A DNA stretch of 64,000 nt from Guillardia theta CCMP2712 (Eukaryota > Protista > Cryptophyta): contig NW_005434616.1 of the NCBI RefSeq assembly GCF_000315625.1, forward strand, positions 434,437-498,436. The letters run 5' to 3'. The notes under the pieces are model-generated. The model was not told the DNA's origin. It worked only from the letters and a program-made list of their open reading frames with translations, and did no database searches. Made by a program: the position numbers and the translations under genes. Shown here in pieces: positions 43,887 to 48,500 of this stretch (position 1 is the stretch's first letter; each line of letters opens with the position of its first letter).

Positions 43887-45295
43887 TCCCTGAGCAGAGC
43901 AAATTCTCCATCGGTGGACGAGAGGATTACGAAATTTAAGAACGTGAAAGGTTCGGTAATGTAAAGAATGACCAATGTTTGCCTGGATTTCAAGAATCGT
44001 GCATTCCTGTTCGATTTGCTTTCCCCGACACATCCCCGACATTCGCTCACTCATAAGACTCTCGCACCTTGTCAAAACTGAGAGAAGGTGTGAATGGGAC
44101 TCTGAGAAACACGCAAAGTCTGACCTGAAACAGAAATTCTTGCGGTATTGCTCTCCTGAGACGCACGACATACAACAGATTTGCCGTATGATTTCCACAA
44201 TCACAATCTTATCGGGAGCAGTCAGGTTGACCTTCAGTTTCGACGAATCAGTGCATTTTGATGCAACACAATAAGTGAGATTCAGTTACCTTGTGAGCTC
44301 CCATGTGGCTGATTGTATCAGCAATGGCATGGATGAGCTTTGTTCTGTCCAACGCATGTGAACAAACCTCGAGTCAACGTATTTCGTACTTGTTAGCGCT
44401 GCTATTTTGTCGAACTTGAATATCGACGCGAAACGTGAGCGGTTTTGTGGCATTGAAGTGAGGTTGACACAGCTGTCAATCTGTCATGAGCACGCGAGCA
44501 AGTCTAAGGTCACCTGTAGTGCAAGGTTCGCTGCCTTCTCAGGAGAAGCATAAGTCGTGTTCTCTACAGGGATTAAGCGCTTCAAAGAATGAAACATGTC
44601 GAGCGAGATGTTGTTCGTCACGATCTTTTCAAACAATCGCGTTGTGAAGGTATTGGGGTCCTCTCCTATGCGATCAATCCACCGAACGAATACCTAAAAT
44701 ATCGATCACATAGGTCGAGGATAGGGGCACAGCAAACCAGTCCTTTCACTTCTGTGAATGAGTGAGTTTTCTTCTTTGACTGGGGATAGAGGTGCTCATC
44801 TTCTAGGTCATCGATCTCCTCCTTGATGATGTCACTCAGTCGTCTCTTCCCGTCAAGCTCCTGACGGATTGGGGTCTCGGGTTCCTTCTGATCCAACCTA
44901 AAGTGGTCGAAGAGCAATGCTACATGCTTGTACCCAACGTCCTGCCATCCTCGACGTCGCGGGTTGACTGAGAAGATCATTCCTTGCGACCCATTTCGAA
45001 GATTGTCAAACGTCAGCTCCTCTTCCTCCCCTTCTCTGATCCTCCGTTTCTTCCTTGGGAAGTACTTTCTGCGCTCTGATCTCGTCGCTCGACCCCCTTG
45101 CAGGCGGAGGAAGAGACGGAGGCACGATGTGGAAGTAGGAGCAGCAGGAGCAGCAGGAGCAGCAGGAGCAGCAGGAGCAGCAGGAGCAGCAGGAGCAGCA
45201 GGAGCAGCAGGAGCAGCAGGAGCAGCAGCAGGAGGGTAGCAGGCAGTCATGAGCAGGATTGCGGCATGCAGCATCAATGTCGCGATTGGCCGCAT
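43875..45295 (-). CDS. THUMPD1: THUMPD1/Tan1-like THUMP-domain protein with signal peptide and presequence ending LRLQGG (putative periplastid/nucleomorph-targeted)
   Basis: Spliced motifs GSQGMIFSVN, LKRLIPVENTTYAS and HKVNLTAPDKIVIVEIIRQICCMSCV match the Tan1/THUMPD1 pattern (KVDLxxP...VVEII...CCLSVV). 3' end approximate. Confidence 0.75.
45139..45231 (-). repeat. 9-bp coding repeat encoding (PAA)n in the presequence
   Basis: (GGAGCAGCA)n, about 10 copies. Confidence 0.9.
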
Positions 45296-45596
45296 TTTTT
45301 CCAATGAGGCGGAATGGGGATCAGTGAACCGCGGAAATTCTCGTAGGAACTCGAAAATGCAGAGCGAGTAGAGGGAGGAGAGAAGAAGAGGAGAGAGAAG
45401 AGGGAGGAGAGAAGAAGAGGAGAGGAGAAGAGGGAGGGGAGAAGAAGAGGATGAAGTCAGCTGTGACTCAAAGATGCGGTGACATGACGACTGGAGTTTC
45501 ATGATGCCGTGATGACGAGAAATCGCGAAGAAAACGAATGAAGACAAGAAGTCTAACAGACTGGATGACGAGGACGAGAATGATGTAGCGAACACA

Positions 45597-48500
45597 ATGA
45601 GGCTTGAAAGCTTTGTCGACATCTTCAATGCAAACGGCGATGGTTGCATCGACGACGAGGAGCTTGAAGATCTTTTGGATCGAATGGAAGGAAAGAAACA
45701 AGCAGCCGGGAAAGAGCGCTTGCATGAAGACGAGAACGAAAGAGGAACGGCAGAGGGCGCAGAGCCGAAACTCGCTTCGGAATCAGAGTCTCATCAAGAA
45801 CTAGACATCATTCCTGATTCCGAGGAAGAGGAGGACAAGCAGGAGAAGGAGCAGGAGCGTCAGCAGGAACAGGAGCAGAAGCAGGAGCAGGATCAGGACG
45901 TCATTCCAGACTCCCAGGAAGAGGAAGCTCGCGCAGCTGACGGCGATGAAAAGCAAGACGCTCATGCGCCTGCAGAGCCTTCATCTCCTCCATTCAGCTG
46001 CACAATGCTTGTGACGTCAGACCTAGACACGGCGTTTCCTCCTATGAAGAACGAGAGGTTCTCACCAAGTCCCTTCCAGGTAGCTCTGCTGCAGCACGTG
46101 GAGCAGGTGCGGGGCCACCTGAGCCATCAGGTCGGGCTGCTAGTCATGGCGACAGCGCTGGGCAAGACGATTTTTTGCATCCTCGACATCGAAAGGCAAC
46201 TGAAGAGAAGAGAAGCGGAGCAAGGAGAGGGAGGGGAGCAAGACGAAGACGTTAGGTTTCAACAAGGCCACGAGGAAGCGCATCAAGATGGGCTGAGAGC
46301 GGATGAGGAGGGAGCCTTTGAGGAGCGTGGAAGTGATGCAGTGCTTCCATGGCGTGTTGTGACAGAGGTCGACAGAGAGATACCCGTGAAGCAGGAGCAT
46401 CTCGAGCTCATCCTTCCGCTGGGTTTCCCTGAGGTATCCTGTCGAAGGTGATTGCTCTGCTCTTGCTGCCCTCTTGGCCTAGCGCAGTCGTTTTGTGACG
46501 TGTTTCTGCAGAGCTCTGCAAGTGCGCGATCACGATCCGCACGCAGCCATTGATTGGCTCCTGTCGCTCCAGGAGGGAAAAGTTTGGGAGGAGCTAAAGG
46601 ATAACCGGGAAGGAGAGCAACGGGGCAAGAGGAGAGCTGGCGGACATTTTCTCCCAGACACGAGGGGAGGGATGAAGTTGACTTGTAGCAAGCGATCGAA
46701 GAGCGAAGGAGGAAGCAGACTGATCGACTTGAAGGGGAGGAGGGCGATGCCCCTCTGCAAGCATTTCACCTTTCTGTTTCTCGTGCACACGAGAGCGATC
46801 CGAGACGCCGCGTATGAGAAGTTTCAACGTCACTTCGTCTCTTTGGGCTATGACAGGTTGTAACAGAGAAGATCGATTCTGATCTCACCCGCTTGTTTGA
46901 AGGGCGAGTTTCTTGAACGTCAGCGAACATCTTGGCAAGGGGCAGCTCCCCGAAGAAGTTGGTTGGTGCCTTGCAGGATTGAATTCTCACGAGCTCTCAG
47001 ACGTTCAATCATGTTCTCTTCATCTTCTGCCTCTTCCAGTCGTTTGATCGTCTTCCTTCATCCGTAGTTCCTCCCTCGACCTGACGCTGCCCTGACGGCT
47101 GTTGGCACAGATAGTCGCGCGCGTGACGCACGTTTGCTTCGACGAGTGTCATCACCTCCTGGCAGAATCTTATCTCAAGATCTTTGAGACCATTCGGCAG
47201 TCGTCCAACTTGACTTACTGCCTGGTGGGCCCTTTGACGCGTCCTTGTTTTCTCTTACACGTGTGTCAGGGAATGACGGCAACTTTGCGTCATCGATCTG
47301 ACCCTCAGGTGTCTCCGACTCTCTCGAGTTGTATCACATTTACTGTCTTGTACATGTCATACACATTGTTGAATCATAGCAATCAACGAGTGATTTATGT
47401 TAAAAAATGTTCAGGGTGAAGATCTCAAGAAACTTTTTAAGGGGGTCCTCTACATTGACTTCTCTTGGATCTCTGCCAAGGTTGTTGCACACCTGTCATC
47501 TGACGGTTCTCACATATGGCAGTCTCTCGGGTTTTTCCCTTCAGTTGAATACCTCGAAGCTCTCCCGACGTTACACAACGGAGCAGGTAGACGCAAATCT
47601 GTCCCACATTTCATTTCTGTCAGATTCTCGTTTTCATGTTGGTGTAGATGCCAAGACTTATGCCCAGCTGCACGTTGACCCTTTGACATTGGCGAGGCAT
47701 CGGTGACGCTACGAGCAGGACATGTTCGTTCAGCACGGGAATGTGAGGAGATTTGTTCGAGACATGGAAACGAGCCTTACATTGATGGGCATGGGCTCAA
47801 CCGAGCAGTGGTAGCAACCTCCCTCCCCCAATCCTATCTCCTTCCTATCATTGCCTCCGTTCTTCTGTCGTTTCTAGTGCTTGACCCACTGCTGCCCGTC
47901 TCGGCTCTCATGTTCCTCGCTTCTTCTTCTTATTCCTCACATATCCATCAGCAGACGGTCGCTCACTCCTGACAACATCGTGCGCACCATCTTCGCCTAT
48001 CAGACTGCTCGCGAGGTTTCCTTGTTGCTCAGCTGGGCTGTAGCTGACGAGTAGTCGAGGCGGCTTGTCTGAGTCCTAAGAGGCGGATGCTCATCTTTGT
48101 TCAGTCTACCTTCGATGCCGACGAGGTTCTAGCGATTCTCCCAAGCTGGTGCTCAACTACAAGCCCACCAGGTGTCGCGTCTGCTCAACCGATCGGAGAG
48201 TCACGATGCCGGGGGCCTCCGACATCTCGCGATGTCCGCACATTACAAGGTTAAGCGTGAGGCCCCGGCTAGCTCCCTGCTCATCTGCCAGCAGCAAGGC
48301 GGGCGAGCCGAGCGCAATGTCGCCAAGTTTGCGTCTCGTCCAGCAGCGGGGATGGCACATGCTCTCGTGACAATCTCGATGCTCAATGAGGGATACGACT
48401 GTCCAGGTACGTGCTGACTCTCTCGCGCTTCCTCCTCACGGGTAGCAGGCGTTGACTTCGTTGTGCTCGCAAGAGTGACAGACAGTGAGGTGAGGGCGTG

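Follow-up and report, generated by a model that had tools for sequence, protein, structure and literature searches.

A 64,000-nucleotide stretch of the Guillardia theta CCMP2712 genome (contig NW_005434616.1, here C58:434437-498436; hereafter the window) carries on its minus strand the gene GUITHDRAFT_112393, which encodes a THUMPD1/Tan1-like protein preceded by an N-terminal leader. It is rather likely that this gene encodes a THUMPD1/Tan1 of the endosymbiont compartment, made with a three-part leader that ends in LRLQGG and is removed at the GG in the periplastid compartment. The signal-peptide-like stretch, the (PAA)n tract, the LRLFLRLQGG segment and the basic THUMPD1 N-terminus noted in a preliminary description of the window were all present in the sequence, on the minus strand. 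The leader was confirmed in the sequence, and its architecture matches, beyond chance, a genome-wide class of leaders closed by the ubiquitin-tail hexapeptide LRLRGG.

The residues of the precursor were numbered from the ATG at 45295, which stands in the context gaaaaaATGc and is the first ATG below position 45345 on the minus strand. Residues 1-19 (MRPIATLMLHAAILLMTAC; 45239..45295, minus strand), delimited from the sequence and the list of ATG codons, form a signal-peptide-like segment with one Arg followed by a hydrophobic core (best 10-residue Kyte-Doolittle mean 2.39, zero charged residues). The putative signal peptide was called from hydrophobicity and the -3/-1 rule; the rule allows a cut at LMT/AC, leaving Ala18 first, or at TAC/YP, leaving Tyr20 first. 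In periplastid signals, the first residue after the cut is neither aromatic nor Leu, which would hold for Ala18 and not for Tyr20. Residues 20-62 (45110..45238, minus strand) make up a transit-peptide-like spacer composed of YPP, (PAA)10 and TSTSCLRLF. The (PAA)10 tract covers residues 23-53 and is encoded by a perfect tandem repeat of 10.2 copies of a 9-bp unit (45137-45228, 100% matches). Residues 54-68 read TSTSCLRLFLRLQGG and end in LRLQGG (residues 63-68, CTC CGC CTG CAA GGG GGT; 45092..45109, minus strand; genome match C58:479529-479545), the proposed junction of leader and mature protein. No Asp or Glu occurs in residues 20-68. The LRLQGG hexapeptide is a one-residue variant of the ubiquitin tail LRLRGG, with Gln for Arg at P3, the position of ubiquitin Arg74, and its CAA codon is one G-to-A change away from CGA.

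The junction is followed by the basic N-terminal region of the mature protein (residues 69-105, RATRSERRKYFPRKKRR...FDNLRNGSQG; 44981..45091, minus strand), which lies outside the public gene model and was recognized by family homology. The remainder of exon 1 (residues 106-186; 44738..44980, minus strand) starts at the annotated Met106 and is 100% identical to residues 1-82 of the public protein P0001. Exons 2-6 (44693-44514, 44472-44390, 44344-44290, 44231-44125, and 44077-44047 with the stop codon; 44047..44693, minus strand) encode the THUMP domain and were placed from spliced RNA contigs. The six exons join into an in-frame precursor of 337 aa, the last 232 residues of which were the same as P0001 when compared by eye. 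After the GG, 269 aa are left, which is a normal THUMPD1 size.

THUMPD1/Tan1 is a tRNA-binding adaptor for N4-acetylcytidine formation from a eukaryotic nucleo-cytosolic family, and it partners NAT10/Kre33 in acetylating tRNA Ser and tRNA Leu. The assignment to this family, already proposed from the sequence, was upheld by the searches. A THUMP domain (Pfam PF02926) was found on P0001 residues 131-210 with an E value of 6.3e-13, and the THUMP domain of human THUMPD1 (PDB 2DIR) matched the leader-bearing protein with an E value of 3.8e-9. The homolog search gave 380 matches; all 11 top-ranked sequences that were read were built like THUMPD1, lacked an enzyme domain and had KRK-rich N-termini without a signal peptide, and one member of the homolog cluster carries the name THUMP domain-containing protein 1. 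The nearest relatives are therefore THUMPD1 proteins and not other THUMP enzymes (Trm11, THUMPD2/3, ThiI). The leader-bearing protein is very divergent (best identity 38%). Its basic N-terminus, RSERRKYFPRKKRR...NGSQGMIFSVN, fits the THUMPD1 motif G-x-x-G-[FI]-L-x-[TS]-C except for the Cys, and GG/RATRSERRKYF can be aligned with N-termini of the family (for example, MGKGKKRKSYY), the residue after GG being Arg and not Pro. Like canonical THUMPD1/Tan1 (PMC4344512; PDB 2DIR), the leader-bearing copy has a THUMP domain, a basic N-terminus, and the motif G-x-x-G-[FIM]-[LI]; it differs in the 68-residue leader, the high divergence, and FSVN in place of the family 'TC' Cys.

A genome-wide search with a THUMPD1 profile gave a weak match on contig C13 (E 0.05), which represents a second THUMPD1 gene (L010, G000:C13:628399-631509, minus strand). 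The exons of this gene, at least nine in number, are short, and its introns are GA-rich. Its N-terminus, MGEEGKR/RNESSNNDRRNK, is canonical and has no hydrophobic leader, as had been predicted for a second, leaderless paralog. The presence of one canonical and one N-terminally extended THUMPD1 is the pattern expected for coexisting host and endosymbiont-compartment copies. The only other THUMP locus (L001, G000:C119:19483-22755, plus strand) encodes a fusion of THUMP with an S-adenosylmethionine methyltransferase of another family, with DPFCGSGT and NPPYG motifs. This protein begins with MKLFQRWLMAHALLLSVLVQPLKSF, which has the look of a signal peptide with Phe close behind, i.e., of a plastid-type leader.

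The public model GUITHDRAFT_112393 (P0001, 232 aa) begins at Met106 (44980) and omits the whole leader. Five GT..AG introns were found in the spliced RNA contigs, intron 44694-44737 being present in three RNA runs. In three RNA runs, the spliced contigs were continuous over 44738-45125, through the LRLQGG codons, and the contigs of runs X1, X2, and X6 continued into the repeat for 40, 38, and 16 nt beyond 45125. The spliced mRNA thus includes LRLQGG and about ten repeat codons in the reading frame of THUMPD1. A possible intron acceptor at CTGCAAG/GGGG (45098), which would splice the leader away, was ruled out because the RNA contigs are continuous across it. Neither an in-frame ATG nor a stop codon occurs between the repeat and Met106, and the mRNA is open for at least 130 nt above Met106. 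The alignment to a profile of 20 THUMPD1 proteins begins at residue 96, ten residues upstream of Met106; the near-invariant Gly of the family corresponds to Gly105 of the precursor, and FERLRSAGINGILVSCDIR of the C13 paralog aligns with FDNLRNGSQGMIFSVNPR of the leader-bearing copy. The unbroken RNA, the lack of an in-frame ATG or stop, the profile alignment and the match to the paralog indicate that the public start is 105 codons too late. An upstream open reading frame of five codons (44977-44994, minus strand; ATG GGT CGC AAG GAA TGA) lies out of frame in a strong context, 14 nt before Met106. Initiation at the annotated ATG (44980), with which its stop codon overlaps, would be hindered by this frame. 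A start at the annotated Met106 was judged unlikely in view of the upstream homology and RNA and this out-of-frame ATG.

A degenerate DNA pattern for L-R-L-R-G-G had 353 matches in the genome versus 255 for the backwards control. The class was sampled at 100 of the 353 sites, located on contigs C1-C22, and 73 of these encode true LRLRGG, versus 32% expected from codon degeneracy. Leaders were called by an in-frame Met and an uncharged hydrophobic core upstream of the motif in an open frame, with random positions as the null. Such a Met and core were found 28-109 residues (median 46) upstream in 40 of the 73 LRLRGG sites, compared with 809 of 20,000 random positions (4%; binomial P about 3e-36), in agreement with the enrichment of signal peptide, spacer and motif on unrelated cytosolic/nuclear-type proteins that had been anticipated. 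Near-variants (LSLRGG, FRLRGG) were also signal-peptide-positive at 5 of 27 sites, giving 45 positives per 100. The THUMPD1 leader passes the same caller (distance 62 residues, core score 2.39) and differs from the exact class hexapeptide by its LRLQGG.

The class leaders are mutually unrelated, with one homologous pair detected by BLAST (duplicated genes), and 43 distinct 18-mers encode the hexapeptides at the 45 signal-peptide-positive sites. The unrelated leaders and the differing codons point to selection on the amino acids and not to a shared piece of DNA. Positions -12 to -1 before the motif show no conservation. The spacers are rich in Ser, Ala, Arg, and Pro, and the proportion of Asp and Glu is 6.8% before the motif versus 16% after it. 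Pro directly after GG was found in 0/45 signal-peptide-positive sites versus 5/55 others. In four cargos, the protein's own Met directly follows GG, and in the eEF1A cargo (LRLRGG/GKEKHH, i.e., LRLRGG/GKEKHHCSIVVIGHVDSGKST), GG is followed by eEF1A residue 2; the position of the motif at the boundary of leader and mature protein, as first suggested for THUMPD1, was thereby seen in other proteins. The remaining cargo includes Ribosomal_L22e, HAT1_N, an aminoacyl-tRNA synthetase OB-fold, SAP, LisH, a methyltransferase, and a GT4 pair and is of the cytosolic/nuclear type. Phe occupied 6 of 167 candidate +1 sites after the signal peptide. A signal peptide, a spacer of 20-90 residues, LRLRGG, and a mature protein constitute a recurrent architecture, conserved at the protein level, in G. 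theta. Scaling of 45/100 to the 353 sites gives about 150 genes, intron-split leaders not counted, and an LRLRGG-type tail probably closes the leaders of more than 100 genes for periplastid- or nucleomorph-bound proteins. Among the sampled loci, L100/L101 (G000:C18:772924-775940) are recent duplicates, a divergent GT4 glycosyltransferase pair with identical LRLRGG leaders, and L071/L072 (G000:C13:130019-134653) are recent tandem duplicates with LRLRGG leaders, one signal peptide seemingly being located in another exon.

Motif forms other than LRLRGG and LRLQGG were LSLRGG, FRLRGG, LCLRGG, and, in Hanusia, LRMRGG. The HAT1 ortholog from the Hanusia phi transcriptome likewise carries a signal peptide, and its motif reads LRLRMRGG where G. 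theta has MRLRLRGG. The G. theta genome contains two Dre2 (CIAPIN1) loci. At the C8 locus, a same-strand open reading frame 0.7 kb upstream (L155, G000:C8:981879-985055, minus strand) encodes a signal peptide, a spacer, and LCLRGG, in which Cys replaces the equivalent of ubiquitin Arg72; no such upstream leader frame was found at the other Dre2 locus. The predicted periplastid Dre2 of G. theta localized to the periplastid compartment in a diatom (PMC6105332), and the LCLRGG leader presumably belongs to the periplastid Dre2 gene. A glutaredoxin-like fold considered for this upstream frame was dropped, since a Pfam search gave nothing. At the Nar1 locus on C33, no leader was found within 1.5 kb upstream.

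The proposed pathway starts from a precursor whose leader would comprise an endoplasmic reticulum signal peptide (1-19), the acid-free (PAA)10 spacer (20-62), and LRLQGG (63-68). The precursor would enter the endoplasmic reticulum and then cross the periplastid membrane via the symbiont-derived machinery (SELMA) that descends from endoplasmic reticulum-associated degradation. In the periplastid compartment, the leader would be removed at or after GG to yield the 269-residue protein with a normal THUMPD1 N-terminus, which could then act on nucleomorph-encoded tRNAs. The tail is probably the site of leader removal, because it closes the leaders of the class; family homology begins right after GG. 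From the known gene content of the nucleomorph, we infer that the periplastid compartment must process nucleomorph-encoded ubiquitin fusions, cutting after LRLRGG. Since the motif equals the last six residues of ubiquitin and a ubiquitin system is present in the compartment, a periplastid ubiquitin-specific protease is the most economical and most attractive candidate for the enzyme, and putative deubiquitinase cleavage at GG is plausible. The preliminary description had taken the gene for a periplastid tRNA-modification factor whose transit peptide is removed by a ubiquitin-protease-like enzyme. This interpretation was supported in part: the THUMPD1 identity, the leaderless paralog, the motif class and the boundary position stood, and the protease is a candidate. 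Extended to the whole class, the proposal that cryptophyte periplastid and nucleomorph leaders end in the ubiquitin hexapeptide and are removed by a periplastid ubiquitin-specific protease, which also strips SELMA-attached ubiquitin, is tentative and not one that we would yet call likely.

Candidates for such an enzyme came from the literature and from the nuclear genome of the alga. The four cryptophyte nucleomorphs sequenced all code for a ZUFSP/UfSP-like putative deubiquitinase (PMC6559170), and Gt2_270, a nucleomorph protein of this type, is one candidate leader protease. In the nuclear genome, the search gave a single Peptidase_C78 locus without a leader, and no nuclear candidate was established. 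A 358-aa OTU deubiquitinase frame (L148, G000:C32:183102-186479, plus strand, from nt 1159) starts with MSAVRLLPMAMLAWRSCA/FHVG; it has a signal peptide and a Ser-rich region, and the likely cut is followed by Phe. Judged by its leader, this protein is possibly a plastid-directed deubiquitinase, and it was rejected as the periplastid leader protease owing to the stroma-type Phe.

Several observations weigh against the proposed pathway or its enzyme. Lysines matter for SELMA import in diatoms, and the THUMPD1 spacer contains zero lysines. Most deubiquitinases need a folded ubiquitin domain; a Pfam search of the 209-residue exon-1 reading frame found no family, hence no ubiquitin beta-grasp fold before GG. 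Cryptophytes do not have ptDUP, the known deubiquitinase of the periplastid compartment (PMC12412216), so the protease would have to be a different enzyme. Homolog searches for cryptophyte orthologs of the leader-bearing THUMPD1, with which the leader could be compared, found none. In the nuclear genome, NAT10/Kre33 was found at a single locus (G000:C71:64851-72000; L013-L016, L143), without an obvious leader; about 600 nt before the N-terminal exon of this gene there is a short SQLRGG with no visible signal peptide. The search of the nuclear genome thus gave no second, leader-bearing NAT10 that could serve as the catalytic partner in the periplastid compartment. The LRLQGG DNA pattern was not enriched (58 matches versus 54 for the control), and among 26 other true LRLQGG sites, 2-3 were leader-like, of which two were convincing, L118 and L123. 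The junction of L118 reads LRLQGG/RRSESRKRR. The unenriched pattern together with the convincing leaders of L118 and L123 suggests that LRLQGG is rare but used.

An alternative that is unlikely, yet carries appreciable weight, accepts the leader as real and periplastid-directing and takes LRL[RQ]GG for a recognition or sorting element, or for the site of an unrelated peptidase, rather than for a deubiquitinase site. The motif might be a ubiquitin-tail mimic read by SELMA, Cdc48-Ufd1-Npl4, or an E1-like factor, or it might act as a 'stop here' signal versus plastid import channels. Under this explanation, the class and the protein-level selection on the motif hold equally, and cleavage itself is what we infer; the lack of a ubiquitin fold upstream of the motif in the class leaders, with most deubiquitinases needing one, and the absence of ptDUP from cryptophytes favor it as well. 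Against this explanation, the motif exactly abuts the mature sequence, as in eEF1A and the four cargos with their own Met, and acidic residues jump across it. Avoidance of Pro after GG is as expected for ubiquitin-fusion processing, and an activity cutting after LRLRGG is presumed in the periplastid compartment for nucleomorph-encoded ubiquitin fusions.

It is quite unlikely that the signal-peptide codons are outside the mRNA or unused, with a start at Met16, at a non-AUG codon, or at Met106, so that the gene would encode a second nucleo-cytosolic THUMPD1 and LRLQGG would be a relic or a coincidence of pyrimidine-rich simple sequence. The public start at Met106, the low complexity of the leader DNA, and the unenriched LRLQGG pattern agree with such a gene, as do the RNA data over the 5' part of the leader. 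RNA contigs had zero depth over 45139-45339 in three runs, leaving the signal-peptide codons 45243-45295 uncovered; six sampled words of 45236-45345 occurred in two DNA runs only and in 0/13 RNA-like runs; and a plus-strand transcript contig starts at 45342, 47 nt from the ATG at 45295. When contigs are built, a dead end that hangs on a perfect repeat and is no longer than about 100 nt is clipped as a 'tip'. Since assembly removes such pieces, the zero depth was judged uninformative; the gap was therefore set aside as proof of an untranscribed signal peptide, yet it is kept as counter-evidence. A transcript start downstream of the signal peptide had been named in the preliminary description as refuting the proposal, and on this criterion the RNA contigs are silent and lend no support. 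Against an unused leader stand the open frame of the mRNA above Met106, the family-conserved residues, including Gly105, encoded there, and the strong out-of-frame ATG before Met106. The succession of Met1 and core, 62 residues, motif, and mature N-terminus is that of the class (the signal-peptide part has a null of 4%), and a canonical leaderless paralog is already present in the genome.

The plus-strand neighbor to which the contig from 45342 belongs has its ATG at 45597, an EF-hand-like N-terminus, and acidic repeats. The divergent promoter between the two genes (region 45296-45600) is very tight, and the 5' untranslated region of the neighbor contains a 29-bp GA-rich repeat at 45362-45451. 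Run X21, labelled as a freshwater metagenome, contains all sampled words of 45236-45345 of this marine alga, which suggests contamination, a spike-in, or a mislabel.

A bipartite plastid-stroma signal with Tyr20 first after the cut, by which the protein would act on plastid tRNAs, is very improbable: the TAC/YP cut meets the -3/-1 rule and exposes an aromatic residue, but LMT/AC is equally allowed, Phe is rare at the class +1 candidates, and both THUMPD1 and the LRLRGG-class cargo are of nucleo-cytosolic type. Readings of the motif as a Plasmodium export element (PEXEL), a Toxoplasma export element (TEXEL), RxLR, or a furin-type site were discarded on inspection, because the residue spacing does not fit.

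Bipartite signals of periplastid proteins are known from cryptophytes and diatoms (Gould et al. 2006; Gruber et al. 2007, cited in PMC6105332 and PMC4494062), and the published rule, as given in these sources, is that the first residue after the signal peptide is non-aromatic. The leaders described here resemble them, as far as those accounts go, in the predicted signal peptide, the acid-poor Ser/Ala/Arg-rich region, and the housekeeping cargo with a separate host copy; they differ in that the rule as cited there includes no conserved ubiquitin-tail hexapeptide at the leader end. Such a hexapeptide ending periplastid leaders was not found in the literature searched, a mention in the supplement of Curtis et al. 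2012 remaining possible, and relative to that literature the ubiquitin-tail ending is a new element of otherwise known bipartite leaders. In diatoms, imported preproteins are ubiquitylated by SELMA and deubiquitinated by ptDUP (Hempel et al. 2010, as discussed in PMC12412216). That system is similar in that preproteins are substrates of ubiquitin enzymes within this very compartment, where a ubiquitin protease is established for diatoms; it differs, in the account given by this source, in that ptDUP takes off conjugated ubiquitin, with no leader removal reported, and is absent from cryptophytes.

Linear ubiquitin-fusion precursors are likewise comparable, as the class has the exact LRLRGG right before the released protein and no Pro next to it in the signal-peptide-positive sample, whereas THUMPD1 has a (PAA)10 repeat in place of a beta-grasp domain and Gln in place of Arg74. 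Coronavirus papain-like proteases cut tail-only LXGG sites and offer a precedent for cleavage by a deubiquitinase fold at a ubiquitin-tail motif without a ubiquitin domain, though in the context of a viral polyprotein, while the G. theta protease is only postulated. The Plasmodium PEXEL (RxLxE/Q/D) is an export motif cut by plasmepsin V. It is similar as a short conserved motif tens of residues after the signal peptide, serving as a protease site that licenses onward transport, and differs in sequence, protease, compartment, and lineage.

The finding bears on how periplastid leaders are removed and how they are told apart from stromal cargo beyond the '+1 aromatic' rule. A tail hexapeptide at the leader/mature junction of an estimated 100-plus unrelated proteins ties their maturation to the ubiquitin-based SELMA import. 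With the tail motif, periplastid and nucleomorph proteins can also be predicted by a simple rule at the sequence level, and truncated gene models such as that of THUMPD1 can be repaired. Nucleomorph tRNAs may receive N4-acetylcytidine via their own Tan1-like adaptor, which raises the question of the origin of the acetyltransferase partner. If the proposed processing is true, the position of Arg74 can, as THUMPD1 would show, also be occupied by Gln, and a single class of enzyme would remove the ubiquitin attached by SELMA and also carry out the maturation of more than 100 imported proteins.

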